Under the pieces are notes generated by a model. That model saw only the letters and a program-made list of their open reading frames with translations. It did not search any database and was not told the origin of the DNA. A stretch of DNA of 64,000 nucleotides, from positions 55,691 through 119,690 of the forward strand of contig MNCI01003446.1 of the NCBI GenBank assembly GCA_015680685.1. Direction: 5' to 3'. This document shows, piece after piece, positions 4,537 to 46,976 of this stretch (the first letter of the stretch is position 1; each line of letters starts with the position of its first letter). Source of the DNA: Gnetum montanum (lineage: Eukaryota; Plantae; Gnetophyta). A program made the translations under genes and the position numbers.

Positions 4537-4806
4537 TGCATTTACTCATCCTAATGCATGATGAAGGTGAATTTGGTTATATACTCATCTGGATGAGTAT
4601 ATACCACCTGACATTCCTAGGGCACTTGTGGTTTGGATTTGTCTCACTTGTGAGAAGAAGGCATATTAGTGTTAAACAAAAAATAACTTGGTATGTCTTA
4701 CTCTTACCTAAGTTGTCTGGCATGAGTAGATTTTTGTGTAATTGGTCCGTTCCAGCGAAGTGAGTGATGATCTTGCTAAGGCTAGATAGCACACATAAGA
4801 GTAACA

Positions 4807-9300: not shown

Positions 9301-10040
9301 CATATGTACATGTTTGGTTGCTATGCTTAACTGGTACAAGATGGAATACCATTTTTGGTATCTATCAAACTCAAATTCCAGAGATGAAGCACTTCCATTC
9401 TTATGATTTTACCTTTCTTGAACACTTCCAAAGATGTTTGAGCCACAACTAAGTGTTGGTCATTCCTCATCAATCCCCCAAGATGTACCCTATGCTTGCA
9501 AAAAAATGAATACCAAAATAGTTAGGACTAAAATAAAAACCTTAAAACCAAAAACAACAAAGGTGATAGATTAAAGTCAAACTTATGGTGTTAGTAGGTA
9601 GATAGTTCCTAGAGGATTTTGAAAGAGTGTGTTTACCTTGTGACCTATCATCACAATGTTACCAAAATTGTATTGCAAGTACTCAGGCATCTTCCAAATC
9701 TATGATAACCTATGAACTCTCCATCATAAAAGGTAGTATTCCTCTCTATCTCTCTCTCTCTAGGTGTCAAGATCATAAATCATGAAATTCAAGATGTAGT
9801 TGGAAGATCTAGACATAAGAGTTTCTATGATTATACTAGCAATATCCACCACCAAGTGTGATCATACAATCAGGTTGAATTGTTGGTTTAAGTATAGCAA
9901 AACTCTTGGGCACCAGGTCTAAACCACATCAAAGTATGATTGTTAATGCTTACATCAAGGTTCAAACTCTTTTGTGTGGCTATCCTAGTGTAAGATACGA
10001 TACCAACTAGCTCCACCACCACTAAAATAGATTTTACCAA
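6389..10040 (-). pseudogene. Third, degenerate copy of the spliced accessory gene (FCP1-like + Transposase_32/PMD-like + coiled coil) in older sequence D
   Basis: Manual translation gives ILVVELVGIVSY (~10000), MWFRPGAQEF..QFNLIV.SHL (~9900), TLFQNPLGTIY (~9610), LHDLFTF..FITDINGYPITLNITTSMFSNIFG (8747-8962), SWAKALDKLEFMKG (~7590) and VDLGDIDWVNMSEEQILHLLEVGL (~6670). All are collinear with the B and C genes and separated by AT-rich introns. Confidence 0.85.
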
Positions 10041-10435
10041 GGACTTGTACTTAGCCAAAATTCATAACTATTAAGGACATGAAAAACCATATAACTGTTA
10101 TAACAAAAAGTAACAAAGTTTAAGCCAAAATTAGTAGTAGCATGAAAACATTGACATCAAATAAAAAACATAAAAATTAATTAAGTGCACTAACATAACT
10201 ACATTTACAATATAACCAAAATTTGGTTTTTATTGACATGGAAAACCCAATTTAACATTTCCATGATCAATTAGCTTATAGATCCTTGGAACAAACAATC
10301 TTGCAAATTGTTGACAAACAAAAAAATAAAATTTGACAAAACTAAAGGGCAAAAATGAAAATGATAGGGCCTAATTGATGTAATTTTTTATGATTTTACG
10401 GTCAAGAAATTCACACAAGTGTGGACATTGGAGAT

Positions 10436-11959
10436 TGAAACACCACAAAATTTTGGCCTAGCACTTTCAAACAAAATTCAAGCTAAGTCATGCTATTGCC
10501 CAACATGAGTATAGCATGACCAAACATGAGAGTCTCCAAAATGACATGAAATGACATTCAATGGAGCAAGCAAAGTCTCCCTGGGGCCCACAGGCGACTG
10601 CACCAGCTTTCGGCATCCAGAATCAAAATTTTTGGGCTCAAAGTGCTTAGTTTTGGCTAAGTATACTTTGGTTGCATTTTCTTACGCTACACAGCATAAG
10701 GCCTAGCGTCACCAACTTTTGGAGCCTCGGAACTGAGCCAAAACAGGCCAAAATTGAGCACAAGGACCCCCCATGACCTCCACTAATGGTTGCCCCAGGT
10801 TTCCAGCCCTTAGGATCCTGATTTTGGGCTCAAAAATACACTATTTTCACTGCTCACACCTAGCTCACGCCTAGGTCAGGCCTAGGTCAAGCCTAGGTCA
10901 CGCTAGAACGTGAGCCCAGTGTGACCAAAAAAATGGGTTTAAATAAGCATTCCCAGGCACAATGTCAGCATCAACTCAACTCCCAAGGGTAGGCAGCCGT
11001 TATACTTGAAGGACAAGCCTTGAAAATCAAGATTCGATGCAAAAATGGCCTAGCGTGAGCCTAGCATGAGCTTCCAAAAGTGGGCTAAAACATTTCAAAC
11101 ACATGCTGAAAACATGCCAGGACAAGATCAAGTCAAATCGACATCCTACAACAGCCGATCCAAGAGACTATGAAGTTCCAAGTGAGCCAGAGTCAAATTT
11201 TAATTGCAAATTCATTGTAAATTTTCATTCTAAGCTTTACCATAGGTGAGCTTGTTAAGCCCTTACGCTGCTTCCATGGGCATAAACTAGCTTGCATTGT
11301 AAGATGCAGTGCACCTGGTCTAGAACGTAGTTTTCCCATGTACACCTATCATGCAATCCATTATTCTCTCATCTCGCCATCATCAATCCTGTTCATTCCT
11401 ACTCCCAAGCCTAGATGAATGCATAAATACCCTGTGCAAAGACATAAACAGGGTTTGCAAAAATTTGGCAAAAGAAACTAGCAATCCTAATCTTGGACAC
11501 ACGTGATTCCCAGCACCTGCAAACACTACACATCGAAGCTTAACATCTGACTTGCAATCCAGATTCGCAACTACGTTTTGAACGGTGCACATTTTGTCAA
11601 TTAATACAATACATTTTCATTTTTTCCTTCTGTTGTGCTGTTCTTATTCATTGTTTGTATTATTTTGTTTTATCGCAAGTTTCTACAATACATTCTCTGC
11701 ACATTTACATGATGTATTTCATGTTTACGTTTCATTTTTATTACGTTCTTCATTTTACATTTCATAACAATAACCCCAACGTAGGCCATAGCATATGCTC
11801 AGGGAAGTCCTTGGTTGATTTGCGTGTAGACCATCCAAGGCACTCTACCTTCATCTTTCCAGCCTTCCCTCACGCGAAGGTAGGGTCATCTATGTTTCTC
11901 CGGAGATATTTCGACGTACGTTTTTTTCCAGCCTTACGTCGATGATTTCGAACAGTATA
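10436..11959 (+). repeat. 5' LTR of element B
   Basis: Direct repeat of 28164-29647; starts with TG, ends in TA (CA>TA), followed by the PBS. Confidence 0.92.
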
Positions 11960-11964
11960 GAAAT

Positions 11965-11982
11965 TGCTGCTAGAAGGAGGGC
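11965..11982 (+). promoter_or_regulatory. PBS of element B (tRNA-Asn type)
   Basis: TGCTGCTAGAAGGAGGGC; 2 mismatches to the complement of the plant tRNA-Asn(GUU) 3' end, TGGCGCTAGAAGGAGGGC. Confidence 0.8.
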
Positions 11983-12074
11983 CGCTTACCGTTTGATAAA
12001 ACCTTAGTTACCCCATAGTTCAAAATGTTGCACTAATTGAGCACTTTAACCAAAACCCCCATTAATGTTGGTCC

Positions 12075-12355
12075 TGTTCATGCTAGGCTTGCTCATGTTG
12101 CAAATTTACTCACGTTGAGACCAGTTACTCATGCTGAGCTTACTCATGCTGACACCAGTTACTCACACTGAGCTTGCTCATGCTGACACCAGATACTCAC
12201 ACTAAGCTTGCTCACGTTGACATCAGTTACTCATGTTGAGCTTACTCACGCTGACACCAGTTACTCACGTTGAGCTTGCTCATGAAAACACTAGTTACTC
12301 ACGCTAAGCTTGCTCACGCTGACACCAATTACTCATGCTAAGCTTGCTCACACTA
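12075..12355 (+). repeat. ~34-bp tandem repeat in the 5' UTR of B
   Basis: About 7-8 copies of GAGCTTGCTCATGCTGACACCAGTTACTCACACT, built from CTCACGCT-like halves. Confidence 0.9.
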
Positions 12356-12414
12356 TGACTAGTCCACATAAGTTAGGCTTTACATAAATTCAGCTAGTCA
12401 AATCGATTACACAC

Positions 12415-15400
12415 ATGGAAGCATCCCAAATCAACGCAACATTGCCCATTTCTGACCTCAATGCTGAAATCTCAAATCCTGTGACTGCAACCAAATCTAT
12501 AGTCACCGTTGGAGAGATGAACCTTCAAGGGCCAACCTGTCAGTCACTTACGTTACAAGGCAAAGATCCTGCCTATACAATTCTCACCTCATAACAATAC
12601 AACTTCATTTGTGTAAAGATCCAAGCCAACCTACCTACTGATTGCGCAGAAATAGAAGCAAAATGACATTTTGAGTTCGTCTATAAGGGGGACCATAATT
12701 TTATCCCCTCAGCATACAATGTGATTCCCTTATCTAAATCTCATCAAGAACTTATATCCCACCTCCTCATGGTAAGGAGTCAAACCTTGCAGCAATCTGC
12801 TGCGGAACCCCAAAACAAAGATGAAGAAGATAATTTCGCGGCTCAGTCCGAACACTGAGATTCGTACCATACTCTCAGTCCGCATACTTATACGAACCCA
12901 TTATTTCACCCTTTCACAGGAGAGACCATGTCACTTCATATAGTTAAAAGCACTCAAGCACATGTGCCCCAACAGGAAGCACCTACTCTCATTCCCACTG
13001 TCCCTATGACCGATACTCAATTCAATGTACCCATCCCCACTATTCCTTCGGCCACCACATTATCCCCTCTCCTACAAGTACAACCCCAACAACCCTCCTC
13101 TCTAACTAATGTAAGAGTGACTTTCCCACCCCAAGTAATTGGGATGCCCTCTGTGATACCCGCTTCCACATCTACACACTTCATCCCATGAGTGCAGGTT
13201 CATACCACACCCTTAGCTCCTCCAGTACAACATCAAGTACAAAGTCTCCCTTCACAACCCATAGTTGGACAATGGCCCGTCCCATTTTTCCAGTCACAAC
13301 AATCTGTTCCACAACCCCCAATTGGCCGATGGTCCATCCCTGTCACTCAACAACAATGACCTATACCTTATGGTATGCTGCCCTGAGTGGGACCCTCTGT
13401 AAATGTTTCACAAGTGCAACCTTAGACCACTCAACTTTCTTCCTTTCTATCCACTATACAGTAGTCTAACTTGTACGACACTCAAACTAGCCAACCTACT
13501 GCTCTACCAAGTGCCCAAGAATGGGCTGAATCCAAAAAGATGATGCAAGAGCTCACTGATGAGGTAAAACACCTCAAAACTGCTAACAACGAAGAGCTTA
13601 AAGTATTAGACTTTTACCAAGATGATCCTATTAGCTCTTTGGTGCCACCATTAACCCTGCCCAAAGGAGTTTCTTTTCCTCAACTAACCAAATACAATGG
13701 GGAAGGAGATCCCAACGCCCATCTGGTCACATTTAGACTAGAATGTTTATTGCTTCAGGCCTGGCCCCACACAATCTTGTGTGTGTTTGTCATTTCCCTC
13801 ACTGGATGAGCTTTAGACTAGTACTGAGCCTTGCCTCGTAACTCCATATCCTCTTTGGAGGATCTCTTACACCAGTTCATTACCAGGTTTAAATACAAGC
13901 TAAAACCTAAAGTGACCTTGGACAGTCTCATATAAGTAAAGCAAGCACCGCTTGAACTTGTACAAAAATTTATCCAAAAATGGAGTGCCACACTCAATGA
14001 ACTTCATGAGCCAACCCTAGAAACATACCTTCTTATGATTCTTAAGGGAGCCGTGAATGATTTTGTCAAATCAAAATTGTACTATCTAAATGCACGCACC
14101 CTAAGCCAAACTTTTGTACAGATCAAGAACATAGAAGAGGCAGCCCAAAGTAGCCATGACCCTGCTTACTCAACCTTCAAAAATAAACACACTAAAAAGG
14201 ATAAAGAAAAGGCCAAAGCAATAGTAGCAATAGTAGCAAAGACTCAACCTACTAACATGGGACAACAAGGTAGACCACCTACTACTCCCATTAACTATGA
14301 GAGAATCGCTCCTGCACATACACCTGAATCATCTACCATGCAAGCTACTAACACAGGTCATGCACATACGTTTGAGAGGAAAGACCCTGCTTAGTACACA
14401 CTACTCCCCATGAAGCCTTCCCAGTTGTTAAATCAACTTTTGAAGGTTGGGACCATTAAACACAAACAACTGTCTCCAACAGCAGCCCAGAGACATGACC
14501 GATTCTGTGAATTGGCCAAAAACCCAAGCTTGGCAACTCCAAATGAGCCTCCTATTCCAAGAGGCTTTAGACTAGATAGATTTTGCGAGTACCACCAATA
14601 GAATGGGCATGGTACTGCTTATTGTTTCACCCTAAAACAAGACATACAATGTATGATTGATAGGGGTGAAATAACATTTAACGATGCCAACCCTATTAAA
14701 CCGAAGAATCAATCTATGGACATATACAAAGATCCCCTTAATACTAAGGAAGCTCCTTACGTTATTAACATGATCCATGTCAGAAATTAGCAAGGTATGC
14801 CCAAAAAAACTTTCATGATTCGTGTTCCTCCTAAAACTTCAACATCATCCCCACAATCTTCGTATCCCACATATAATCTGCCTACACTGACAAAACCATT
14901 TGTTATTCATGTACCCCCTGCCAATGCAATCACAAATGTACAATCACCTACCCAGCTCACTCCCTTTGTGGTTCGAGTGCCACCTACGGTTGCAACCATG
15001 GAGGTACAACTGCAAAACCAACCAACTCCCTTTGTAATCAAGGTGCCCAAACACCTTGATCTTCAACCTCCTATTCCTCAACCACAAACCAAATCGACCC
15101 CATTCGTCATTATGGTGCCTAAACAGCTTGATGCACAACCACATCCAAATGTTCAACCACAACCTCGACCAACTCCATTCGTAATCCGAGTCCCAAAACA
15201 ACCTGATGTTCAAGCTCCAACAGTTCCCCCACGACCTTTGCAAGAACGCCTCACCAACAAACTCACTAGAGAATGGTTGAAAAAAGAACGTTGAAATCTT
15301 GAATTGGGGCCACCAAAACCCACTCCCTTAAATGTTGTACCTATGGCTCTGGCAACTGATGAGCCAAGCATGAGTCATGAAAGCAAAAAATCAGAGATGC

Positions 15401-16512
15401 CAGATATGTCGAACCCAACCATCACACTAGACCACATGAAGACCATTCCACAAGAGATACAATTGTTGGGTCCAATGGACCAAGTCTCAACTAGCAAGAC
15501 TATTCCAAATAGCCAAGACTTGGCCAATGCCCTAACTCAGGTCACACAAGCGCTTAAACAGAAAAATACATCTTTGAGCTTGTATGATCTAATGATGACT
15601 TCTCAAGTTCAATGTGAACCCTTAGTATGCATGTTAACATCGATCCCGGTCAGTGAACACTTGCTTGCAAATGAACCTTCCATTCATGTGGTAATGTCTC
15701 CATATCAAGGATCAAGAGCCACATCACTAAGCTTTAATGTGAATAATATAAAAATAGATGAAAAAATAGGAAAAGTCACCACTGCACCCATGTTCATAAC
15801 TATACAAGTAAATCAATTTAAGATACACAAGATGCATGTAGATGACAGAGTGGCCACGAACGTAGTACCATACCCCGTCATCGAACAGTTAGGGCTAACT
15901 GAACAAATCAAACCAACTTCCACGACATTCCTGAAATCGTTCAGTAGATCACGCGTAGTTGTCAAAGGAACACTAACTTTGGACTTCATAACAAGGGACC
16001 AGTTCCCCACGTTAGCTAAATTTGTGGTCGTAGATGAGATGCCTGGATTTAACTTGATATTGGGATGACCATGGCTAGCCCAATTAAAAGCGGTATCCTC
16101 ATCCATCCACCAAGAGATTCACTTACCCTATGAAGGTGGTGAAATCATTATACACGGTGATGCGGCTACATTCAACACCTCGACACACGTAGGCACAAAC
16201 CAAGGCTCAAAGTTCGAAATTGATGAGACTAAACAAGATGACATTACTCTTGAGCTTAAATAAAATGCCACACTCACTGAAAACCAAAGTGATAACCAAT
16301 CCCCAAACTGTGATCCCCTGGAAGATATAGAAACATTACAAAATGTGGAAACATTAGGACATGCTGACATAGGAGTTATTCCGCCAGACGTCTCATGGTT
16401 TGAATTGCCATTTAACATAATTAGCGAAGGAGATGCTGAATATACAATTACACCGACATGCCCAACACACCATGTCAATTTGCAAAAATTAAAGAAGCTA
16501 CTCAACCATTAA
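12415..16512 (+). pseudogene. gag: gag-protease of element B (disrupted)
   Basis: KYNGEGDPNAHL gag core, CEYHQ.NGHGT..C knuckle, PFVIRVP repeats, protease VDD(R)VATN...FNLILG.PWL; terminal TAA at 16510-16512. Confidence 0.9.
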
Positions 16513-16756
16513 ACTACAATCGTCTGAAATGACGTTAAACTACAATCTTCCGAAATGACGTTAAACTACAATTGTCTGAAATGACGTTAAACTACCACAT
16601 GTCCACAATAACATAAAACTAGCCACAATCAGGAATGGTCGATTTCAAAAAAAAACCTACTGAAACAATTTAAATTTCTCGTGTTTTCTTATGGCCTGAA
16701 ATGGCCTTAAACTAGAATGTTGTTGCACGCATGGCCTAAAATGGCCTTAAACTAGA
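16509..16756 (+). repeat. Hairpin+TAAACT motif cluster after the gag-PR stop (B)
   Basis: CGTC-tgaaat-GACG-TTAAACT x3 (degenerate) and GGCC-tgaaat/taaaat-GGCC-TTAAACT x2. Confidence 0.85.
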
Positions 16757-17159
16757 ACAAGTTTCGTTTTTGTTTCTTTAAAATTACATTCTTGTTTGCA
16801 TGCATATTTGCATCCTTGCTCTACAAATTATTATTCCCCTTACATTTCTTCCACACTGTTACCATTTTATTTACATTCACACTTATATTTATAAACAACT
16901 AAAACAACAAAAACAAATTACAAAATTGAATCACAAAATTAAAAAAAAAAATCATTCGTGTTTACACTTGTGTCTACCCAAAGTTTGGACAAAAATTTAG
17001 AAAAAAAACTTGAACAACATAAAACACCAAAAAAATGTGTAAATGTATAAATATATCAAATGTTAACATGGTATCATACATTTTTTTTCATACAATCTAC
17101 AAAGAAAAGACAACAAACTAACAAAGAAATGACAAGGTTGACAGGACCAACAAGTCAGA

Positions 17160-20100
17160 TCATGCACTAGTGTTAGGAGGAGGTTGGTCCCCAAAATCCT
17201 CCATGTCATCAGCCCCTATCCCACTAGGGCTAGCCTCATCAGCACCACACCCTTATCACGAAGAGAAAACAAAACAACAAAATGAGCAGACGCACAAAAA
17301 GAAAAAAAAAGAACAGGTAAAAGAGAGCAAAGACACTAGAGAGGAATGATGACTAAAAGTAATAAAATAATGCAATAAAATACTCATGGATGAAGAAGAC
17401 CTGAAATTAGCTTCTAAGCACCATAAAATCTCTTCTTCGGGCACACAAGCCCAATCTTTCTCGAGTCCGAGGTCGATGTTGGCCAAGGTCTTACCCTTGT
17501 CCATGGGAGACCAGGAGGGACGCTCAAGAGAAAACACACTTGTTGAAACCTCCCCAAAGGTAGTGGTAATGGATCTCTCAGGAGACCCCTCCACTTTTGT
17601 ATATTCAACGAACTTCTCATAAGAAGAGCATAAACCTAACCCCTCCACGAACATCTCCAACCGGCGACGTTCCACTGATTCCTCTTTTAACTATTTTTTA
17701 TATTGGTGCTTATGATCTTTCTAATCTTGGCCCCATTTATGTACTTTGGATGCAAAGGATTTCCAGCCATGGCACTTCCTATTCAATAGATCCATCTGGG
17801 CCCTTTGTTCGGCCAAATCTTGAATCGCCTACACCTTGTTATTCAAGCATGCCCAATAACGTACATAAATGATCTCGAATGAACGCCATGTACTATCATT
17901 TTCCAACCTAGCAGAGGAAAAATCATAACGGGCTTGCAAATCATTTCTCTCCTTTGTCATCTTCGCCAGATTTTCCTTCAATGATTGAATTTCAAGCCAT
18001 AGTTGTCCAATTAAGCGCCTGTAAGTCCAGAGAGATTTGGCATTTGGGACAACACAACCCGAAATCGAATCATAAATCTCTCTTAGGATCTGCTCAATAT
18101 CTCTTGGCAATTCTGGGAGACTATTAATATGAGTAGCCTCAGAAGGATTCCATTGAAGCTTTGCACCTACAAGTACAAACATTGCACACATAAGCCAACC
18201 AGAAATCTCCAACAGAAGCAAAAACACAGTGAACTTAGGCACTTAGTATAAAGTACACACCTAATTCAGGATGAGCCTATCTCAAACAAGCTACAACATC
18301 ATTGACAATGCCAATGACAAAGTCTACTTTATTAGGCACCTCAGGCCACAGCTTCAATGGATCAGTGGATCTTGGATTTATATGAGAAGGCATCTTAACT
18401 GGGGCCTCAAACTCCGACCCACATGCCTAAGAAGCATATGCTTCAGGTACCTTAGCATCTATATCTAATGTCAAGCAAAGCCATGATAGTTAAAATAATG
18501 CATGAAACTAGGAAGATACAAAATGCAGATCAAACTAACAAGACTTACCAAGCGGCCCTCTACTGGTCAGCTCAGGCGGATCACCAAGGTGTAGAGACCC
18601 ATCGAAGAAACCATCAAAAACATCTTTCTTCTCAATTGAGTGTTTAAGGGCATCTAAAGCCTCAACAAGTGTCATGTCCATGGTGCTCATTTCATCCTCT
18701 TCTCGTAAGATGGAAATGGCCTCAACTGCTTCTTCCCTCGTATCCTCCTCTTCGTTACACCCAATGGTGACTGTTTTAGGTTCATCCATTGGAGCTAATT
18801 TCTCCCTCTCTCTCTCGGGGGTATCCTCTGTTAACACCAGTAAACCTAAAGTTAGCATGATGTAATAGGCATACATATCTAAGTAAATAAGTAAATTCCA
18901 AAAAAGTAAAAAAAAAATTGAGCAAAAATAATAAAATACTTACCCACTCTTGGCAAGGTGAATCGAATCTTCTTAGCTCTCAGCGACCTCGCCTCTATGG
19001 TAGGATCCCTCAGATGCTCACCTCTTTTCACCTTAGCCTTGGCCTTTTCAACAGTCTCTTAGATTAAGCGTCTAGCCCTCCTAACACTAGTGTGCAGCTG
19101 AGGTTGATCTAACCCCAGGCTGTCACATGAATGGCGGGAATGATTAGCTGCGCCTCCTGTTGTGACAGAGACTAACCCCTTGATGCCTTCAGGTGGATCT
19201 TGGGATCTAGTGGTGTTAAATAGGTGACAAATCCAAGGGTGAGACAACTATGAACGGTCCCTTAACACATAATGGGTATCCCCATAGACCACTAAGAACT
19301 CAGCAAACCTACGAAAATAGCCCACAAAAAAGGCAAATGTGAAGTGTGACCTAGCATCAACATTGGAACATAGCTTGCTGATCTCTCCACGGAGACCCAA
19401 TACAAGGAAATGCGCCCATTCATAATGCATACCAGTCTCTAAGACTGAACACATAACATGCACAAACTCCACCCCGAGACTTCTTGCTTGGGAAAGAGAC
19501 TTAGGAAATGCTCGAGCTCTAAAGAGCAGGTACATAAAGTTTGCCTTCATCGAACGAGTATCATCTTGCATGGTGAAGCCTTTAGGACCTCGCGGTACAC
19601 CTAGCCAGTCTTCAAGTTCCTTACCACATGTCTCTCTTTAGTTCCCCTATCAACCGCCACCTTAACACCATTCACTGGCACATCAAAAAGATCGGAAAAG
19701 AATTCAGCGGTGATGTGGAAGGACACCTTTACTCCTCGAACCCGTGTGGTAAAATGGGAGACGTCATTGTTAAAAGAGTCAACTATAGCAACCATTTCAG
19801 TAGTGGGAACGTTGGGAGTCAAGGTGGTAAATAGGTCCAGTAGGCCTACGCTAGTGAGATGGCTGATGATTTGTTCAGGTGCCTTCTTATGCAACCACTG
19901 TTGCGACTCCTCTGTTTCTACAAACTTCATACAAAGAGTAGCCTCAGTGCGCCCAGATATGACGGTAACCTCATCAAGAGGAACGACCACTATAGAAAAG
20001 ACATAGGTGACATTGAGCCAAAAGAAAAAATCAAATCAAAAACATGCTAAAATGAAAATAAATCCTGGAACACGATCATTTACCACTAGTAAATGGAGTA

Positions 20101-20888
20101 GGTACACTTGCTGCAAGGTCAATCATTTGAGGAAAAATAGGCCAATCAGGAGACCAATCCTCATGTAGCCAATCACGAACTCGACAACATTCCAAGGCCC
20201 TAGAGAACTACCTAGGATAATTGATAATAGCATCCTTGGTCTAGCCTAACACTGCAGAACGAAGTGTGGGGCCCATCATGAACGCTTCCAAGGCTCTGCC
20301 TACTATGGTAAGTTCGTTATCATCCTCATGCAATCCATGCTAAGCAAAATGGAGCCTGCAAAAGAAAGAACACTCATACGCGAACAATGATCATAACGCT
20401 AAGCAAGTCAACATTAATACACATATAAAAGAGCATACTTGTCTACTCGATATACTGTTCTAGGTGGGTTTTGAAACAGTGTGTGTGCACAGCAAGCTAG
20501 AAACAGTGTGCTACTACTATTATAATGGCTGCAAGATGGAAATCCCCACACACAAGTTAAAGAGCATGTAGATTTAGGACCTTCAAGAATGCCTCCCTTG
20601 ACCACATATAGCCCCTCTTCTATGTCAGCAATGAAAGCTAGCACACCCCGCGTTGAGCTAGGTAATATGGTCTCAACAATGTCACAAGTCAGCTACTCAT
20701 TCAAATGAGACCATATGACAACGCTGAAATTCTGTAGAATAAATGACAAAAAGGCACCAACATTTGAATGAAACCATATCACGTGTGCCCTGATCAGCAT
20801 GTCATAACTGGTCGTTTTCTGTTCCAAAGGGCCGAATCAAGATAGCACACCAACCAGTTCAACCACAAGGAGAGAAGGCTTAGGCCCC
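17160..20888 (-). pseudogene. Antisense spliced accessory gene of B (FCP1/NIF-like pseudo-phosphatase, Transposase_32/PMD-like domain, acidic region, coiled coil)
   Basis: GT-AG bounded exons 20888-20439, 20355-20084 and 19989-18944, plus further exons to ~17160. Homologous to 37851-41531. Start exon not identified. Confidence 0.85.
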
Positions 20889-23181
20889 CTACACCAAAAC
20901 AAAATCCCAGGTAAGTAAGTTAAAATTTGTAAACACACAAATGAAAGTAACCATTAATGAAACATGACTATATATCCCTTCATCAATCCGAAATCATTGA
21001 AATACAGTGGCAACAGATTTCGAATACAAAATCGAGACTTATTTTGAAAAATGCATTGTTCCCTTAGGAGATACATAGATGGAGTGCATGCTGACGAAAA
21101 AGTCTGGTCACCATTGGCCCTTATGTGTAGGGTACTGCTTATAACATGATCATAACATATGCATAATGGAGCTGGCCATGTTCAAAAAAAAGAATATATA
21201 TCAATAAGATGTAAACCTATTACATCTTATTACTAGTCCAGCACTAGTAGGAGCGTTCATTTTACATCTTATTACTGGTCCAGTGCTAATAGGAATGTTA
21301 GTTAATTTGTGTACATGTGCTAGCCCACTATATATAAATGACTATATCTCAAAATGCTACTCCACATGGTAGGGCCTTAAATGTGCTAATTTGTTCATCA
21401 TATTACTGATAACCTAATCATGTATCAGCTATCCATCACACGGTAAGGAGAATATGGAATGCCATATTTAGCTAAAAGTAATCCAGGGTAACAGCACCTC
21501 ATGAATTGAGACAATACCATCATACCAACTTGAGGCATGAGATGCTGATCCAAATTGCAAGATTGAAGATCAACAACAATATCACTGCACGCGTCGCCCA
21601 AATTAGAGGTCTAAGTCACGCTAATTTTGGTTCAATAGCCCACACTGCCAAGTAAGAGGCCTAACTCACCCTGGACAATCCAAACCGGAAAACTCACGCT
21701 GCAATAGAAACGAAGGCAACAACTCATACTCACGTTGCAAATGGTAGCTGACTCATGCTACAAATGGCAGCTAACTCACGCTGAGCATGTAACAGTCCAT
21801 CCAAAATCATGGATGTCAACACAATCACTCACTATATTGTAAACAGTTCATAGGACCAAATGCCAAACCTCGGATACTAGTTATGGGAAATCTATTAGCA
21901 CAAGCAGTGATTTGGTGTTTGAATACAAGACTTTGTATTTTAACCTTTGAGTGTCAGTTTATAGGATAACCCATAAACACCGATAAAATTTTAGCACAAG
22001 CGTTGGTTATTTGTAGTGAACCAACAAGGTTGATTTTGGCTAAAGGCACTATTCATGTTACTTATGCTGCCTAGGGCACGTTACTCACACTGCCCAGGGC
22101 AAGCAACTCACACTAGGGCAATTTGCACTGCCAAGGAAATTCACATGCATACCAGAGCATCCCTCACGATGACACTAGAACCCCTAAACCAGCCTCCAAT
22201 AACTCATGTTAAAGCCCGATTACTCAAACTAGCTGATTCTCAAAAGGTAACCCCAAATGCAATTTAAAACACAAATGCCCTGGAACATAGTGAAGGAATA
22301 TAGAAAACGTGATCATTGCTAGATAATTAAAATTTAAATCGCCCTCATACACTAAAATACGGTGGTTCCCATAACTCAAATACTGCCACTCGTTGGTGTT
22401 ATGCTGCGAAAAATTGAAAAGAAAAGAGGAAAGCAATAAACCTACATAGGGTTCCAACCCACGAAGAAACCCTTGGTTATAGAAGGCATTGAAGCAACTC
22501 CTTGCTCTCTTCCACAAACACTAAGCTTGCCTACCTCTTCCCCTTCCCTTGTTCCAGCTTTCCCTTGCCCTTCATCTTGCTCTATTACTCACGTTGTTTC
22601 TACTCTGTACTCATGTTGTCCTGCCCTGTTACTCATGCTGTCGGTCCCTCTTGCTCACGTTGCAAGTCTTCAAGTCGCTCACGCTGCTTAGAAGTCACGC
22701 TAAGTACATGTTTATAGTTGCTCATGCTAATGGAAAATCCTCCAACTCACACTGCCTTCTATTCCCAAGCATTCACGCTGCTCGTCACCTTCATCAACTC
22801 ATGTTGCATTGGTTACTCATGCTTGCATCTCACTTGGCCTCCCCTTTTTTTTCTTTACCCCAATTGTTTACACGTGGCGCGTTTTACCTCATTTATATCT
22901 TACTTATTTTATTCTATCCTTGTACTTTGAGGTAGCCATTTCTTTTATTTCTTGCATACATTTATTCATTCTCCCAAAGCAACTTAGATGTTTTAAATCC
23001 AAGAAATTTATGTGCATAAAGCTCAAATTACGTTTTGGCTTGGTACGGCCTTAAACTGCCATACTATGGCCCAGTATGGCCTAAAACTTCCATTACATAC
23101 CACAATCTTGTTAGACTAATCATGTGGAACTTAAACCTTCCTCATCAAGAAAATGTTGTTTAAATTGGTAGGAACAAGCAT

Positions 23182-26100
23182 ATGGACAGCAAGAACCTCT
23201 TTTCAACATTGTCTATCAATGGACCACATGGGGCCATTCAACGAGAAGTTGACCTAGAATCCATTGATCTAGACTCATCATCAATTTATGAAAATTTTGT
23301 GGCATCCACTCAAGGAACATCAGATTGCTTTGAGGATATGACTAAACCTTTGGACTTAGAAGTCGACAACATCACTGAGGATCCCCTCGTTGAAGTCCCC
23401 ATCACCATGTCTAGTGGCGAGCTTAAAACATTAAAATTAAGTACTTTACTAAATCTGCAAATTTCCAATGACATTACACGAGTGTTGAAGAATAATATAA
23501 AAACTTTCACTTGGTCGTATACTGATATGCTAGGATTGGACCCTTGCATCATCCAACATAACATCATCCTCGATGAAAAACTTATACCGGTAAAGCAAAA
23601 GGCACAAAAGGTTAGGCCTGAGGTAGCATTGGCAGTTCGTAATGAAATCACAACACTATATCAAGTTGGTTTTATTTGGGCTGTTGATTACACCTATTGG
23701 GTATCTAACATTGTTGTAGTCCCTAAGAAGAACGGCAACATTCGCATATGTATTGACTTCCATGACCTCAACGTAGCCACTATAAAAGACAACTTCCTGC
23801 TACCCAGCATCGATCAACTTATTGACTCAACCGCCAGGCACGCATTATTGTCCTTTATGTATGGATTCTCGGGATACAACCAAATTAGGATCAAACCAGA
23901 ACATCAACTCAAGATAACCTTCATGACACCTCGGGGCATGTTCTGTTGTACAATGATGCCATTTGATCTCAAAAACGTGGGTGCCACGTATCAATGGGAA
24001 ATGACATATATATTTAGCGATTATATGCTCAATTCACTCAATGATTATGTAAATGACATCGCATTCAAGTCCAAAATAACCAAACAGCACGCGAAGCACC
24101 TAGACTTGGTACTCAAATGCTATCTCAAATACAACCTTAAGAATAACCCAAAGCAATAAGTCTTTAGGGTTAAGATGAAAAAAATGCTTGGCTTCATAGT
24201 CTCCGAAATAGGTATACGAGTAGACCCTAATAAGGTCAAAGCAATAACTAATATGCAACCACCTAGGAACCTCACTAAATTACATGGTCTGCAAGGTAGA
24301 CTGCAATTCATCATGCGCTTTATTATGAAGCTAACTGATAAGTTGAAACCCATGCAACATTTACTATGAAAGAATGTCCATTTTCAATGGACTCAACTGT
24401 GCCAAGAGGCCTTTGAAAACATAAAAGTAGAGTTGGCTCAACTACCAACGATTCATCCCTCGCAAAGTGATATACCTTTTTACATCTACCTTGCCACGTC
24501 TGACTCATCGATTGCGTCCATGCTTTGCCAAAAATAAGAAGATGGAGCTGAGATCCCCATTTACTATTTAAGCCATGCCTGAACTACATACAAACAATGC
24601 TACAACGATGTGGAGAGATCGTGTCTTGTCCTAGTATTTTCCTTAAAGAAGTGGTGATACTATCTCTTTCGTAATCAATTCTATATCATTTGCAAAGATA
24701 ACGTGCTTCGAGCTATCACAAACAACATCTATGAGTCAAGTAGGATAAATAGATGGAAGGCAATGATTGTAGAGTTTGACCTATGCTATGTTGGTTAATC
24801 CTCCACTAAGGGTCAAGCAATAGCTAATCAATTGACTGCATCACTGATACAAGATTAAGTGACGATCAACCTTGAATTTCCTAATGAAGATATTAGTAGC
24901 ATAGACGTAGTGTCCAATAATTATGATGCAATCCTGTACTTTGATGGAGCATCCACCTCCAGAGGAGGAAGTGTTGCAACCATCATAACATATCCCTCGA
25001 AAGAAATTCTCCCTTTTTCCTATCGACTAAACTTCCCTAGCACCAACAATGTGGTAGAGTATGAAGGTCTTCTTAGAGGTATTATAGTGGCATTAACTTC
25101 AGGGATCACACGTCTTGTAGTTCGCGGTGATTCACAGTTAGTAATCAATCAAGTCACTGAAATCTACGCATGCAAAGCTCTGCATTTGCAACCATACTAT
25201 GACCTGACAAAACACTTACTAAAACAACTAATCAATGTAGACATGCAACACATTCCTCGAAACAAAAATACTATTGCTGACACACTTGCCACACTAGCCT
25301 TGAACATGACACCTGACATGTTCCATGCATTGCCTAGTTCTATAACAAATTGTGCCAAACCTATGATCAACGCACTTGATGAAATACCCATAGTGTCTGT
25401 TAGCACTACACGAGTAATAGAGTGGTACGATGACATAAAAGAGTACCTTCTACGAGGCGAACCAACATACCATTTGACAAGCACTCAAAAATATGTGATG
25501 CAAAAATGCTCTAGACAATATGCATTAATAGGGGATACCTTGTGTCGCAAGTCCTATGAAGGCATCTTGTTGATGTGCGTCAGTAGCATTGATGACAAAA
25601 CGATAGTGGAGTAGGTTCACGAAGGACTGTATGGAGGGCATATAGCACCCAAAGCAATGGCAACAAAAATTAGATGTTTGGGCTATTACTAGCTACACAT
25701 GGAGTACAATTTCTTCTCCAGGGTCAGGAAATGTAACATTTTCCAAAGGCATGGTAACCCAATACATGTACCACCTAATGAGTTGCATACTACACAAATC
25801 ACATGGCCATTCAAAAAATGGGGATTAGACATCATTGGGTCAATAACACCACCATCTTCAACAAGACATAGTTTCATCATCACTGTGACCAAATACTTTA
25901 CCAAATGGGTAGAAGCCATTCCCCTTAGGAAAACCACGTCCAAACACGTTTGCAACTTCATATTAGAAAACATCGTAACCCGCTTTAGTATCCCAATGAC
26001 CATAGTCATCGATAATGGGCCACAATATAGTAGCACGGATACTAAAAGCTTCTATGAATGCTTAGGTATTAAACACTCATTTTCATTATCCTACTACCCA

Positions 26101-26661
26101 TAGAGCAATGGTCAAGTAGAGTCTATGAATAAAATGATCATCATGGTGCTCAAGAAAATGCTGAATCAAAGTAAGAGATGATAGCACGAGTAGTTAATCT
26201 ATGCACTATGGACATACCGAACAATGCATCGAACGTCCACAGGTAAGACACCATATAGCCTAGTATACAGATCTGAAGTTGTGTTACCTTTGGAGTTATA
26301 GGTGTCCTCGCTGCGGATAACGCTCTCTAGCCTCCTTGATGAAAGCCAAAACAATGAACTACACATCACTGACCTTGACTCGGTGAAGGAAGAAAGAGTA
26401 TGAATGCTTGACCAAATCAAATGGTACCAAAGATAGTAACGACAATGTCATCAACATAATCCACATAAGTAGCTGATCAAGGAAGGTGACCTAGTTCTCA
26501 AGGCAGTCCGCAAACACTCAGAAAAATTTTCAGCCAACTAGGAAGGACCTTACTTAGTCACTAAAGCATATGATAATGGGGCATTCAAGCTTGTCGACAT
26601 GGACAAAAATGAATTGGCCAATCCTTCAAACCACATGTACCTGAAACCATTCTATGTCTAA
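23182..26661 (+). pseudogene. pol: pol of element B: RT, RNase H, additional (archaeal-type) RNase H, integrase with GPY motif
   Basis: FTWSYTDMLGLDP, WVSNIVVVPKKNG.IRICIDF, FSGYNQI, YVND; aRH LYFDGAS..TNNVVEYEGL..GDSQLVINQV; integrase WPFKKWGLDIIG, DNGPQ, EGPY. Multiple stops. Confidence 0.95.
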
Positions 26662-26678
26662 TGATCTTAAGGTACGTC

Positions 26679-26990
26679 ATGGTCCTAGCATCACGACCTA
26701 AAACTGATACCACAGAATAGTCCTAGAGCTATGACTTAAAAACTAGTACCACAAAACGTCCTGGCATCATGATAGTAAATCGACACCACAAAGATCTATC
26801 CTACATGACACTAAACTGTTACACTCATTCACCAGAGTCCACTAAGACTATAAAATAGCTAGCCTCTTCATAGTCCACCATGACTATAAACTAGCATGGC
26901 ACCATCTGGTACGATGCTAAATTGGCAACATCCAATGGGTTATGACGTAAAACTAATCCACGAGAGTCTGCCAAGACTATAAACTAGCAA
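26679..26990 (+). repeat. Hairpin+TAAACT motif array in the 3' UTR of B
   Basis: About 9 degenerate units, e.g. TAGTC-caccat-GACTA-TAAACT and AGTC-tgccaa-GACT-ATAAACT. Confidence 0.8.
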
Positions 26991-28150
26991 CTTCTTCACT
27001 AGCCTACTAATCTGTTGCTGAAATTGAATGGCATGTCATCATCAACCTAATCAATGAATTCATCACATGGCTCTGACAACATTGCTGCTTCTCAATTTTG
27101 TTTGCCTACGATTGCACGTGGTATTTCCATCCCATCAATTTCATCCATGTTTAAAGTGTTAAGCTAACTCATTCACTTGTGGTTTTCTTGTCTTCTTGGA
27201 GTTATGTTTGTAGGATGACACCCAAAGGTGTTCGTACATGAATGCACTTCATCACGACAACAAGGTGACACATTGTTCCTAATGCATGTAACCAGGTTAA
27301 TCAAACCATTCACAAGTACATTTACAATTCCTCAAACATCCCTTATTCCCTAACATGTTCTCCCTACCCATTTTCCAGATACATCCCTGTCACCCCTAAA
27401 CTTGAACAACACTATTGCACACTGTAACTCTCCAAGTAGTTGTGCAACACAGCATAGCCCATGATACAATTACAAGCACACAAGCACAAGTACAAAAAAC
27501 ATGCTCTTGCCAAAAACAAAAAAAAACAAAAAAAATAGAAGGCTAAAATAATAATAAAAATAAAAATGAAAATCAAAGAGCAAAATCCATCATAAGACCA
27601 TTGGCACTTCCCATACAAGCCCCAGGTGGGAAGGTACTTGTCTTGGAAGAAAACACTCATGTCTCAAACAATCACGTTGCATCCCACTACGTGGCTTTGG
27701 CTATTGGACAACGGGTTCTCTTTGACACTCAATAAGAATCTTGTTTCTCCAAAGAACGTACCACCTCACCGCGTGGCTCTGGTTGTGACAACGAGTTCTC
27801 TTAAACATGATACAGGAGTCTCATTCCTCCAAAGGACGCACATCCCATGCCTTGGTCCCAAGTCTACTAGATATTGGCTATTGAAAAGGACCAACATGAT
27901 GTGATTCACACAAGAGCATTCCTCTTCCCATAGTTAAACAAAATCATCCCTTCATCAATCCCCGATCTCGCAGTAACAAACCTTTCTCCCTATACACCTC
28001 AAAAACCTCATTTCCCAATTCCATGTACTTCTGAACATGGTGCGATGAAATATGGCAAAGTGCCAAAGAACAATGCTTGATACCTAGTTTCTTGTGGTGT
28101 TTTGTACTTCTTTGTCAACACCTCTTGGGTAGAGTCCTCCAGACATCAAC

Positions 28151-28159
28151 AAAGAGGGG
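28151..28159 (+). promoter_or_regulatory. Polypurine tract of B
   Basis: AAAGAGGGG-CCAA immediately before the 3' LTR TG; identical in C. Confidence 0.85.
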
Positions 28160-28163
28160 CCAA

Positions 28164-29647
28164 TGAAACACCACAAAAATTCTAGCAACACTTCCAAACA
28201 CTTCAGAGCCTCTGAAGTGGTTTCAAACAGCCCACCATGGAGCAAGGAAGGTCCCCATGGGGCCCACAGATCATGACAGCAAGTCTCGGTGTCAAGAATC
28301 ATCAGTTTCAAGGTCAAAAAGTGCAATTTTGACTAACTACATTTTTCAAACGTTGCACAGCGTAAGGCTCAACGTCACCAACTTTTGGAGCCCCGAAACT
28401 AAGTCAAAATAGGTTAAAATTGAGTACAAGGACCCCCCATGACCTCCACTAATGGTTACCCCAAGTTCCCAACCCTCAGAATCCTAATTTTGAGCTTGAA
28501 AATACACTATTTTTACTACTCACGCCTAGCTCACACCAAGGTCAAGCCTAGGTCACGCTGGAATGTGAGCCCAGCGTGACCAAATGAAAATGGGTTTAAA
28601 AAAGTAGTCTCAGGTACAATGTTAGCATCAACTCAACTCCCAAGGGCAGGCAGCAGTTATACTTGAAGGAAAAGCCTCGAAAATCAAGATTCGGTGCAAA
28701 AATGAACCATTCTGCCTATCTCATGCCCAGTTCACACTGAGGTCACTCTAATAGCGTGAGCCTAGCGTGAGCTACCAAAAGTGGCCCAAAACATTTCAGA
28801 CATACACCGAAAACACGCCAAGACAAGATCAACTCAAATCAACATCTTGCAGTAGCCGATCCAAAATACTATGAAGTTCCAAGTGAGCTGGAGTCAAATT
28901 TTAATTGCAAATTCATTGTAAGCTTCACCATGTGTGAGCTTGTCAAGCCCTTACACTGCTTCCATGGGCGTAAAATAGCTTGTGTTGTAAGATGCAGTGC
29001 ACCTAGTCTAGAACGTAGTTTTCCCACGTACACTTGTCATGCGATCCGTTATTATCTCATCTCACCGTCATTGATCCTGTTCATTCCTACTCCCAAGCCT
29101 AGATGAATGCATAAATACCCTGTGCAAAGACATAAACAAGGTTGGAAAAAATTTGGCAAAATAAACCAGCAATCCTGAGCCCAGACGCACGTGATTCCCA
29201 GCACCTACAAACACTACACATCAGAGCTTAACGTCTGACTTGCAATCCAGATTCGCAACTACATTTTGACCGATGCACGTTTTGTTAATTAATACAATAC
29301 AATTTCATTTTTTCCTTCCGTTGTGCTGTTCTTGTTCGTTATCTGTATTATTCTATTTTATCATGGGTTTCTGCAATACATTCTCTACACGTTTACAAGA
29401 TGTATTTCACGTTTACATTTCATTTTTATTACACTCTTCATTTTACATTTCGTAATGATAACCCCAGCGTAGGCCATAGCGTATGCTCAGGGAAGTCCTT
29501 GGTTAATCTGCGTGTAGACCATCCAAGGCACTCTACCTTCATCTTTCTAGCTTACCCTCACACGAAGGTAGGGTCATCTATGTCTCTCCGAAGATCTTTT
29601 GACGTACATTTTCTTCCAGCCTTACGCTAATGATTTCAGACAGTACA
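28164..29647 (+). repeat. 3' LTR of element B
   Basis: TG...CA direct repeat of 10436-11959. Confidence 0.93.
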
Positions 29648-30919
29648 AAGATTATGAAAAAGTGGAAATAACAAGTATGAAATTTCATGGCTCTTAAAAT
29701 AACAATGCTATCACATATCCTTACAAAATGCACTAAAACACCTTGTACATTACAATAAATTATAGAACAAGTTCTATACATTAAAAATAATACTTAAAAA
29801 ACTTCACAAGATTCATAAACCAATCCTAGGTACCAAACATTGTCACTCTAGCCAAGTGAACCAAAACTGTGTAACCAAAACCAAAATTGAGCAACCTAGA
29901 TGCTAGAGGCTAGAAAAAACATCTAAAAAAAGTATAAAAACTCATTTTTACTTGAAAGTGTAGAGAACATAACCTCAATAACCAAAAATAACCATCAACA
30001 CTATAGTTCAAGTGTAGGAAAAATTAAAAATGAGATATTTTTCACTTGAGCCTTTTACTAAGAAAACTTAGTTTGTTGTAAATCAATTGTAGTAAACACC
30101 CTAGGAAAAACTCATAAAAATTTCAAAAAATTACAAAATCCATAAGAAACCATTCTACACTATTTTTTCCATCTCTCATGAGCCAAAACACTGACAACAT
30201 GTAGCCAAAAATTTGAAAACACTATTAGTTTTCCCTTAGAAAAATTGCAAAATTTCAGTAAAGTAGGCCAGAACACAAAAAATTGAGTTGGGAAAAAACC
30301 AATAAAAATTATTAAAAACTCATAAATATAAAATTTCACCTCTATTATCACAATAAGACCAAGAATAACACATCTAAGCACTCAAAATTTCAAAAATATT
30401 AGGCTATACATTCTAGGAAAAATGTCAAAGTTGAGTTAAAATTCACCGAAACTAGAACAAAAAAATGTTGAGCATAGATTTGGGAAAAAACCCAAATCTC
30501 CTTAAATCCATCACCAAAAATAAAAATCTTTATTTTGATAAAATTGATGGGCCTAAACCTTCAATTTAGCACAAATAGAGTGAAAAATTTCAACCTAGCT
30601 AGAGGTGGAAAAATGATTCCACAAAACTATAAAAAATTAGAAAAAATGACAAGAACTTGGTATCTGGTAGATCTTGATGAAGACCCTTCTTCCATAGTAT
30701 GATCTTAAAGGCTTGAAATAATTTTTATGGCATCCTCCACCTCATCTAAAACTAGATTTCGACTACTTGACTTAATCCTTTTCACCAGGGTTATTGAGAG
30801 CTTCAAACCTTCACCTTGATTGTAGCAGAAGAAAAGCCTGAAACTCCTTGCCCTATTGCACCAACGTTGTGAGTAGAGATGGATGAACACTAAGATTAAT
30901 AAGGATATGTGATGATATT

Positions 30920-31194
30920 TTTAGCCACCAATGTGGATTCTGGGTTTCACACTTAGGATACTTGGCAGAAAATAGCTATGGTGCTAGAGTTGGTTGTAAC
31001 AAATCCTTCAATCCTGAAGTGCCTTGAACGTAGATAAGAAAATGTCTTTATAAAACCAAGAAAACCTTCTTCACATTGATCTTGAGAATTTTTATAGAGA
31101 TGTAAAACCTTGTATGGTAGGTTTTGGTTAAAAGTTTCTATTTTGACCTTCCTAATCATGCTTCCCAGGATAGTGCATAAACTAACTTGGAGAG
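30920..31194 (-). pseudogene. C-terminal half of a second FCP1-like relic in D, split by insertion of C
   Basis: LYKNSQDQCEEGFLGFIKTFSYL...STIAIFCQVS.V.NPESTLV; in frame with the sequence at 48475+ once C is removed. Confidence 0.5.
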
Positions 31195-46953: not shown

Positions 46954-46971
46954 GCCCTCCTTCTAGCGTCA
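46954..46971 (-). promoter_or_regulatory. PBS of element C (tRNA-Asn type)
   Basis: Minus strand reads TGACGCTAGAAGGAGGGC, 5 nt from the LTR end. Confidence 0.85.
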
Positions 46972-46976
46972 TTTTG

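Follow-up and report, generated by a model that had tools for sequence, protein, structure and literature searches.

In LTR retroelements, pol almost always lies directly after gag, and the two are fused by frameshifting, by readthrough or, in Ogre, by the splicing of a short intron; this gag–pol coupling sets the Gag:Pol ratio. Ogre (TatIV; pea and Medicago) is a large Tat-clade element with a 5-bp target duplication, in which gag and PR share one frame, pol occupies a separate second frame and aRH is located between RH and INT. The Ogre spacer averages 274 bp, is free of genes and is spliced out as an intron, and the extra ORF of Ogre (PMD) lies in sense orientation 5′ of gag. In Retand, Grande, RIRE2, TatIII and TatV, an accessory ORF antisense to gag–pol is located between pol and the 3′ LTR and is inherited by most family members, and the Grande ORF has a promoter of its own, from which it is transcribed. 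These ORFs, which carry PMD or Transposase_28 domains, are predicted as uninterrupted in surveys, with no introns mentioned in the literature searched. In the open-access literature that we searched, Tat extra ORFs are placed either upstream of gag or downstream of pol and nowhere else. Outside the clade, retroviruses also carry spliced, polyadenylated antisense genes, HTLV-1 HBZ among them; as such introns run opposite to the genomic RNA, they are not lost during replication. HBZ has its start in the 3′ LTR, is located beyond pol/env and leaves gag–pol uninterrupted. In foamy viruses, a separate spliced mRNA serves for Pol, which starts at its own ATG and is thus not part of a Gag–Pol fusion, and an internal promoter drives the accessory genes.

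We compared these systems with two elements, B and C, of Gnetum montanum (contig MNCI01003446.1, GCA_015680685.1); the window, i.e. the whole stretch of DNA analysed, is 64,000 nt long, all coordinates are window positions, and the tool-based examination covered these two copies only. Self-BLAST and LTR-end alignment placed element B at 10436–29647 on the + strand and element C at 31195–48474 on the − strand. The 5′ LTR of B (10436–11959) starts with TGAAACACC and ends with ACAGTATA, its 3′ LTR (28164–29647) is immediately preceded by the polypurine tract ACAAAGAGGGGCCAA, and the element is flanked by GAGAT on the left (10431–10435) and AAGAT on the right (29648–29652). In C, the 5′ LTR (46977–48474) and the 3′ LTR (31195–32691) are bordered by an identical target duplication, GAGAG, on both sides (48475–48479 and 31190–31194). 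B and C are two distinct LTR retrotransposons, both dead, and each has LTRs and a 5-bp target duplication of its own. The LTR pair is 82% identical in B and 91% identical in C, while the two elements are ~72% identical to each other, with 71–73% nucleotide identity in gag and pol and 65–67% in the exons of the accessory gene described below (self-BLAST). Both copies are pseudogenised, and C is also missing the integrase core. As both are dead, they provide no evidence for present-day activity of the layout. As part of the explanation that we favour, they are likely to be dead copies of two long-diverged families within one Tat-clade Ty3/gypsy lineage.

The domain order of the elements, gag-PR followed by RT-RH-aRH-INT, is that of the Tat clade, Ogre/Retand type, and they share with Ogre the large size and the separation of a gag-PR frame from a second pol frame. 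Pfam matches were obtained for gag (PF03732, E 1.9e-07), RT (PF00078, E 9e-18 in C), aRH (PF13456, E 2.5e-19) and the integrase core (PF00665, E 1.2e-13), and a weak one for the aspartic protease (PF09668, E 0.0046). In B, the gag-PR region (12436–16512, +) is degenerate and spread over several frames, with a protease-like stretch at 15304–16068 and a stop, TAA, at 16510–16512. B pol (23182–26103, +) opens at a conserved ATG and comprises RT (23182–24159), a degenerate RH (~24265–24723), aRH (24859–25614) and the integrase core (25699–26103), where the ORF ends. In C, the likewise degenerate gag-PR (42214–46416, −) includes gag at 45294–44740, a protease-like stretch at 43185–42700 and a TAA stop at 42216–42214, and pol (33959–36471, −) starts at the conserved ATG at 36471 and contains RT (36175–35366) and the zinc-binding part of integrase (34363–33929). 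Compared to B, ~1.1 kb containing the integrase core is gone from C pol, and the pol ATG and first residues are conserved between the two. An aRH between RH and INT is the literature marker of the Ogre/Retand type; because aRH sits between RT/RH and INT here, the Tat membership claimed in the initial annotation, which had been made without database searches, holds.

The gap between PR and RT measures 6,669 nt in B (stop 16512 to pol ATG 23182) and 5,742 nt in C (42214 to 36471), which confirms all four positions at which that annotation had placed the end of gag-PR and the restart at RT. Each edge of the gap has an array whose repeat unit combines a small covarying hairpin with a downstream TTAAACT. 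In B, five units (4-bp stem, 6-nt loop, then TTAAACT) lie directly after the gag-PR stop (16509–16757, +), the stop itself falling inside the first TTAAACT, and two further units of hairpin plus T(T/A)AAACT (23035–23092, +) lie 90 nt upstream of the pol ATG. In C, hairpin–TTAAACT units again lie directly after the gag-PR stop (41950–42205, −), and two repeat units upstream of the pol ATG (36611–36691, −; direct-repeat family D2) match the motif. Homology between B and C extends to the gag-PR stop and the hairpin array, and restarts at the hairpins preceding the pol ATG. The exact DNA pattern of the conserved hairpin unit gave 0 matches in metagenome and viral contigs. An acceptor-like TTGGTAG/GA is conserved 10–11 nt upstream of the pol ATG (ending at 23171 in B; 36489–36483 in C), with a 1-nt indel separating B from C between this AG and the ATG. 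No known RNA family or tRNA was found in the gap.

In the 5′ leader of B, where Ogre has its extra ORF, there is instead a sense-strand array of CAYGYTG motifs (12092–12321, +; 11 copies of CTCAYRYTG), and no ORF of ≥70 codons was found between 11960 and 12928. A second, leader-like cluster of sense-strand CAYGYTG motifs lies in the head-to-head spacer of B (21693–22806, +), which separates the start codons of the accessory gene and pol. From one ATG to the other, the spacer is 0.6–0.9 kb long (22576–23181 in B, 36472–37372 in C), and it repeats the leader array in both elements: 25 matches were counted where 4.5 would be expected, and only three are not on the sense strand.

In contrast to the gene-free Ogre spacer, the 5.7–6.7 kb gap contains a single gene, homologous in B and C, antisense to the element and convergent with gag-PR, of ~8 exons and 1,000–1,050 codons, which splits gag-PR from pol. 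In B (17160–22575, −), its exons are E1 20888–20439, E2 20355–20084, E3 19989–18944, E4 18827–18549, E5 18426–18261, E6 18166–~17390 and a last exon at ~17255–17160, with a candidate exon 0 at 22575–22535 (−; ATG 22575); this copy contains stops and one frameshift. In C (37373–41652, +, i.e. antisense to the element), the exons are E1 37851–38300, E2 38374–38645, E3 38737–39782, E4 39907–~40190, E5 40264–40467, E6 40558–41338 and E7 41430–41531, ending in a TAG stop at 41529–41531 with a poly(A) site at 41648–41652 (+); the ATG of the candidate exon 0 is at 37373 (+). GT..AG borders occur at homologous places in the two genes, the lengths of E1 (450 nt), E2 (272 nt) and E3 (1046 nt) are equal, and the introns between E1 and E7 are 73–124 nt long. 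Sequence is the only basis for inferring exon 0, which is degenerate in C, and the promoter. The ~7 introns distinguish this gene from the accessory ORFs of Retand, Grande, RIRE2, TatIII and TatV as these are described in the literature searched.

Comparison of the two gaps by tblastx gave seven colinear blocks. In the five longest, the antisense frame scored 1.4–2 times the next frame (277 versus 139, 264 versus 139, 188 versus 104, 149 versus 98 and 103 versus 74 bits), whereas all six frames scored alike downstream of pol, in non-coding sequence at the place where Retand and TatV have their accessory ORF. For codon comparisons, stops were set to X and those codons dropped. Identity at the three codon positions was 62/72/40% over 908 codons of the accessory gene and 77/86/52% in pol; dN was 0.40 with saturated dS in the former, compared to a dN of 0.18 and a dS of 2.1 in the latter. 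At the protein level, B and C share ~50% of residues in the accessory product and ~70% in pol. A third, distant homologue of the accessory gene lies outside both elements, at 6989–10061.

The layout, its homology in two independent insertions, the conserved exon borders and the coding-type substitution pattern of the antisense strand are shown by these data. The module has changed in step with the remainder of the element but has retained its reading frame and exon borders. As the same module and junction occur in independent insertions, with frame and borders kept and no termini of its own, inheritance by retrotransposition fits the data and two nested insertions do not. Neither gap yielded insert termini (direct or inverted repeats), internal LTRs or a target duplication, and no transposase, RT or integrase was found in it. 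The initial annotation had proposed that B and C carry the same antisense multi-exon gene at the same position, which the tblastx blocks and GT..AG borders bear out; that the gap lacks an internal LTR or target duplication, which also held, termini of its own having been named beforehand as a refuting result and not found; and that this is an inherited family trait and not a nested insertion, which the comparison of B and C supports. Its description of Tat extra ORFs as lying 5′ of gag or 3′ of pol, and of a short PR–RT intron in Ogre, agrees with the open-access literature searched, in which we found no description of the inherited layout reported here. Its further claim, that a three-gene layout needs either a very large intron or a separate pol transcript, leaves a choice that our data do not decide.

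RNA reads were aligned only to 36400–42399 in C, from four runs, three of which look unstranded. Most reads are <90% alike and only partly aligned, and we therefore take them as coming from relatives. These reads cover the accessory exon blocks and not the spacer. One read joint leaves at 38301, which is the predicted E1 donor when the base shared with E2 is allowed for. Poly(A) reads end after 41648 and 41652 (45 + 34, ~80 in all), on the strand antisense to C and ~120 nt past the accessory stop codon. Polyadenylated RNA of the antisense strand is thus shown, from relatives. No reads joining PR or the leader to pol were present, but the depth over the pol start (≤ ~4) is far too low to exclude such a joint, and no RNA start sites for pol were seen at the same low depth.

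The accessory product appears to consist of a degenerate NIF/FCP1-like HAD domain, a large domain of unknown family, an acidic stretch and a coiled-coil-like tail, although the domain identities are weak or absent. Searches were run exon by exon on stop-free pieces only. The Pfam match to NIF/FCP1 (PF03031; exon 1, C copy) is weak, at 17.1 bits against a curated cut-off of 21.8 (E 0.0045), and the catalytic DxDx(T/V) motif is absent at the start of the domain, which reads VVELVG in B, C and the homologue at 9891–10061. Apart from this match, all Pfam matches of the exon pieces at E ≤ 10 were at chance level, and none was to PF04195 or PF10536; the gene thus matches neither the PMD nor the Transposase_28 domains of other Tat accessory ORFs. 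A plant mobile domain (PF10536) or Transposase_32 over exon 3 was considered and is unsupported, with no match, although a distant relation is not excluded as only stop-free pieces were searched. The PDB sequence search returned nothing significant, with UBLCP1 at E 0.72 only. A two-sequence profile of exon 3a gave 0 matches in 1.84 billion representatives, as did a word-based search with exon 1 and a search of metagenome contigs with the accessory protein. The protein Atlas returned only unnamed Streptophyta clusters at 0.92–0.93 and one at 0.90 with 10% DUF1985, and none when limited to named clusters. AlphaFold models of the product were unusable (pLDDT 35–38).

Overall, the likely explanation is a Tat lineage with an inherited 5.7–6.7 kb module at the gag-PR/pol junction, composed of the antisense gene, the head-to-head spacer and the hairpin arrays at the edges. 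We infer that retrotransposition would leave the introns of the accessory gene in place, since they lie antisense to the genomic RNA as they do in HBZ, with which the gene shares no sequence relation. The gene would be driven by its own internal promoter in the spacer, instead of a gag–pol fusion, pol would have a message to itself, produced by splicing or internal initiation and read from the pol ATG, and the accessory protein may act for the element as a regulator. Foamy viruses are a working analogy for such pol expression, which is inferred for B and C; in foamy viruses, however, PR stays with Pol and no antisense gene lies between gag and pol. A bolder reading, which we consider possible but less likely than not, is that there are three transcription units: gag-PR on the genomic RNA, a pol message from the leader-like internal region and the spliced antisense gene from the same spacer, its product (dead phosphatase fold, orphan domain and coiled coil) being an element-encoded regulator, e.g. 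of transcription or silencing.

As 6 kb and a whole antisense gene were kept at the junction while the families diverged, the Gag:Pol ratio must be set in some other way. The lineage must also pass a long, intron-bearing, host-like gene through reverse transcription with its introns kept. Annotation has a blind spot here: such a gene would be missed, and the elements that carry it might be called nested or fragmented. Should the family prove abundant in the genome, repeat annotation, gene prediction and the dating of elements would all be affected.

How pol is expressed allows more than one explanation. The first, which we folded into the best explanation and consider slightly more likely to be wrong than right, is that pol has its own sub-genomic message, made by splicing a leader donor to the AG before the pol ATG or from an internal promoter in the spacer. 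Retroviruses make env, and foamy viruses make pol, by splicing from a leader donor. The conserved ATG with an AG just upstream, the repetition of the leader's sense-strand motif array in the spacer of both elements, and the position of the candidate accessory first exon, which begins on the opposite strand 0.6–0.9 kb away from the pol ATG, are consistent with this. Against it, no RNA start sites or joints were seen at the low depth available, and the motif arrays may serve other roles, e.g. packaging or protein binding.

The second, which remains possible, is a giant version of Ogre-type expression, in which the whole 5.7–6.7 kb gap is one sense-strand intron and gag-PR is fused to pol in a fraction of transcripts. 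In its favour, the Ogre intron is at exactly this junction and its splicing has been shown experimentally, the acceptor-like TTGGTAG/GA is conserved before the pol ATG in both copies, and gag and PR are read in a single frame, which is also the case in Tat lineages of flowering plants. However, there is no strong conserved donor near the PR stop, the conserved GT sites being GAC/GTC and GAC/GTTAAA, and the 1-nt indel between AG and ATG leaves no donor/acceptor pair that keeps the frame in B as well as in C. In addition, pol keeps its own conserved ATG, and no such joint was seen among the reads, whose depth is too low for this to count.

Third, the layout could be a dead-end rearrangement, e.g. 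a Tat 3′ antisense ORF moved by recombination, that is present only in non-autonomous copies mobilised in trans. Both copies are defective, C without the integrase core, the usual 3′ position holds no extra ORF in either, and the plan of a domain plus coiled coil resembles the PMD-CC ORFs of other Tat lineages. We consider this unlikely, since the layout outlasted the divergence of two families to saturation, during which both pol and the accessory gene retained their coding signal, decay is expected of old copies at these LTR identities, and a move from the 3′ end would still yield a heritable family layout. The weakest alternative, a separate mobile cassette with the hairpin/TTAAACT array as its target, acquired once by the B lineage and once by the C lineage, could draw on the same short repeat on both sides of the gap, the greater divergence of the accessory gene than of pol and the homologue outside B and C, but is very unlikely given a gap without termini or target duplication, a cassette without a transposition enzyme, the same order, orientation and borders in both elements, and literature showing that accessory ORFs usually change faster at the protein level.

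Two further candidates were rejected: a MULE-like nested transposon, for lack of inverted termini, and ribosomal frameshifting at TTAAACT, given the frame mismatch, stems of only 4 bp and the distance of 6 kb to pol. The nearest RT relatives of the elements, e.g. in Victoria and Taxus, are only 45–52% identical.

We compared the window with itself and aligned the LTR ends, and this delimited two complete LTR retrotransposons. Element B lies on the forward strand at 10436-29647 (LTRs 10436-11959 and 28164-29647, 82% identical; flanks GAGAT and AAGAT), and element C on the reverse strand at 31195-48474 (LTRs 31195-32691 and 46977-48474, 91% identical; flanks GAGAG and GAGAG). Both have LTRs starting with TGAAACACC and share the polypurine tract ACAAAGAGGGGCCAA. 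They are 71-73% identical across gag-PR and pol, and are separate insertions from two diverged families within one lineage. The Pfam order is gag, aspartic protease (weak match), RT, archaeal-type RNase H (aRH; PF13456, E 2.5e-19) and integrase core, with gag and PR sharing one frame. As aRH is located between RT/RH and INT, published criteria place the elements in the Tat clade with the Ogre/Retand order, confirming the Tat assignment of the initial annotation; the closest recorded RT proteins are 45-52% identical. Element C lacks about 1.1 kb present in B, including the integrase catalytic core (C 33956-33959 versus B 25713-26862), and is therefore an internally deleted copy, on top of its stop codons.

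The initial annotation had claimed that gag-PR stops at 16512 (B) and 42214 (C), that pol starts 6.7 and 5.7 kb later, and that the same antisense multi-exon gene occupies both gaps without an internal LTR or target duplication; each of these claims held. The gag-PR frame closes at TAA (16510-16512 in B, 42216-42214 in C), and pol starts at an ATG conserved in both copies (23182 and 36471) and followed by homologous residues, leaving gaps of 6,669 nt (B) and 5,742 nt (C). Neither gap contains candidate direct or inverted repeats that could mark insert termini, or a target duplication, and Pfam domain searches found no transposition enzyme in them.

A tblastx comparison of B with C gave seven colinear blocks within the gap. 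The antisense frame outscores every other frame by a factor of 1.4-2 in the five longest of them, while all six frames score equally in a conserved non-coding stretch 3′ of pol. Identity of this accessory gene by codon position is 62/72/40% (908 aligned codons), a pattern like that of pol (77/86/52%); dN between B and C is 0.40 with dS saturated, compared with 0.18 and 2.1 for pol. Short AT-rich stretches separate the blocks; at homologous positions in B and C they begin with GT (mostly GTAAGT) and end with AG. With those borders exons E1, E2 and E3 measure 450, 272 and 1046 nt in B and C alike, and the internal introns of E1-E7 span 73-124 nt. The gene comprises about eight exons and 1,000-1,050 codons if one includes a candidate first exon, inferred from sequence alone, whose ATG is at 22575 in B and which is degenerate in C. 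Stops and a frameshift occur in both copies, as expected given their age. The spliced model was assessed only one exon at a time, in just two copies, both dead.

RNA reads from the same species (four runs, of which three were oligo-dT and one strand-biased) were aligned to C 36400-42399. Most are less than 90% alike and only partly aligned, so the RNA derives from related copies. The reads cover the exon blocks, and those of the oligo-dT runs leave the spacer at 36800-37800 empty. One joint (n = 3 reads) departs from C at 38301 and fits the predicted E1 donor, allowing one base shared with E2. Poly(A)-bearing reads (45 + 34, after 41648/41652) are on the + strand, antisense to C, and put the poly(A) site about 120 nt past the accessory stop codon at 41529-41531. 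Together, exon coverage, the joint and the poly(A) reads show that the accessory gene of this family yields polyadenylated antisense-strand transcripts, as seen in RNA from relatives of C. A few reads from the strand-biased run, X12, share the accessory orientation and lie upstream of the candidate first exon and over the pol start (C 36400-37199); they could reflect an upstream antisense start or read-through.

In the literature searched, extra ORFs of Tat and other plant elements lie either upstream of gag or downstream of pol, ahead of the 3′ LTR, and the Ogre spacer is short (~274 bp, compared with 6,669 and 5,742 nt here), in agreement with the initial annotation. The REXdb survey was restricted to ORFs that run without interruption for at least 250 codons and lie outside the polyprotein region, and would therefore have missed the accessory gene. 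No antisense gene lying between PR and RT is described in the full-text literature searched, which did not include the key 2011 extra-ORF paper.

Whether pol is reached through a very large intron or a separate transcript, the two options raised initially, is not decided. TTGGTAG|GA is conserved 10-11 nt ahead of the pol ATG, and comparison of B and C revealed no strong conserved donor near the PR stop. Owing to a 1-nt indel between this AG and the ATG, no pairing of donor and acceptor keeps the reading frame in B and C alike. The head-to-head spacer that separates the candidate accessory start codon from that of pol (0.6 kb in B, 0.9 kb in C) repeats the sense-strand CAYGYTG motif array of the leader, the region after the 5′ LTR, so that arrays occur twice per element (B 12092-12321 and 21693-22806; C about 46640-46800 and 37025-37741). 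CTCAYRYTG has 25 matches in the window versus 4.5 expected, nearly all in the B leader and spacer; C also shows both clusters, more weakly. On the basis of the conserved AG, the lack of a strong conserved donor, the indel and the leader-like array, we lean by inference towards a separate pol message, which would be spliced from the leader to the conserved AG or begun within the spacer. The less favoured alternative, an Ogre-like giant intron across the whole gap joining gag-PR to pol, is countered by the same lack of a strong conserved donor and of an in-frame site pair. No reads join PR to pol, but depth at the pol start is about 4 at most, which is uninformative either way.

The gap is flanked on both sides by a short unit consisting of a 4-bp stem, a 6-nt loop and TTAAACT, with five units past the gag-PR stop and two ahead of the pol ATG in B, and C arranged likewise. 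These units (16509-16757, 23035-23092, 36611-36691 and 41950-42205) are nearly confined to the two gap edges, their stems covary (CGTC/GACG, GGCC/GGCC, AGTC/GACT, TGTC/GACA), and the gag-PR stop codon sits within the first. The simplest reading is that, before the split between B and C, the gap contents would have entered, or grown inside, an older hairpin array lying where PR meets pol. Independent targeting of the array by a cassette in the two lineages cannot be fully excluded, but is very unlikely and has no supporting evidence. RNA-seq depth over the hairpin units is 5-10 times that of neighbouring regions, which probably reflects the many related families whose reads match there.

E1 matches the NIF/FCP1 phosphatase family below threshold (17.1 bits versus a cut-off of 21.8) and UBLCP1 weakly (E 0.72). 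VVELVG replaces the catalytic Asp motif in B, C and a third homologue; if the domain is indeed a NIF fold, it would be a dead one. E3, the best-conserved part, has no relative in Pfam at E up to 10 or among 1.84 billion representative proteins; a word-based search with E1 and a search of metagenome contigs for the product also gave none, and the protein Atlas returned only unnamed Streptophyta clusters. An acidic exon and a coiled-coil-like E6 are predicted from inspection of the sequence. A PMD or Transposase_32 identity is unsupported by any profile or sequence relative; a distant relation is not excluded, because only stop-free pieces were searchable.

The third homologue (6989-10061, reverse strand) lies outside B and C, is far more diverged (29-38% amino-acid identity) and pseudogenised, and keeps VVELVG and donor-like breaks at matching places. 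It is 5′ of, and co-oriented with, a different gypsy element, and may represent a sense 5′ ORF of the Ogre type belonging to that element, an older split-pol remnant or a free gene copy. A partial Ty3/gypsy element whose PR and RT are contiguous, truncated by the left window end, occupies 24-4541 on the reverse strand (protease-like motif 2281-1988, RT 1274-530, RT_RNaseH_2 317-93); its RT shares only about 37% identity with the RTs of B and C. The window contains a single host gene, an intact, intron-less, GC-rich GT17 ORF (52154-53305, reverse strand; 383 aa; PF04724), 58-67% identical to orthologues across all angiosperm groups equally, with no closer match. Together with the distance of the nearest RT proteins, this suggests that the host is probably outside the angiosperms or poorly sampled among them; long overlapping ORFs in other frames there result from the high G+C. 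An assembly gap of 503 N lies at 55823-56325, and short dispersed repeats are present at 58.6-61.4 kb.
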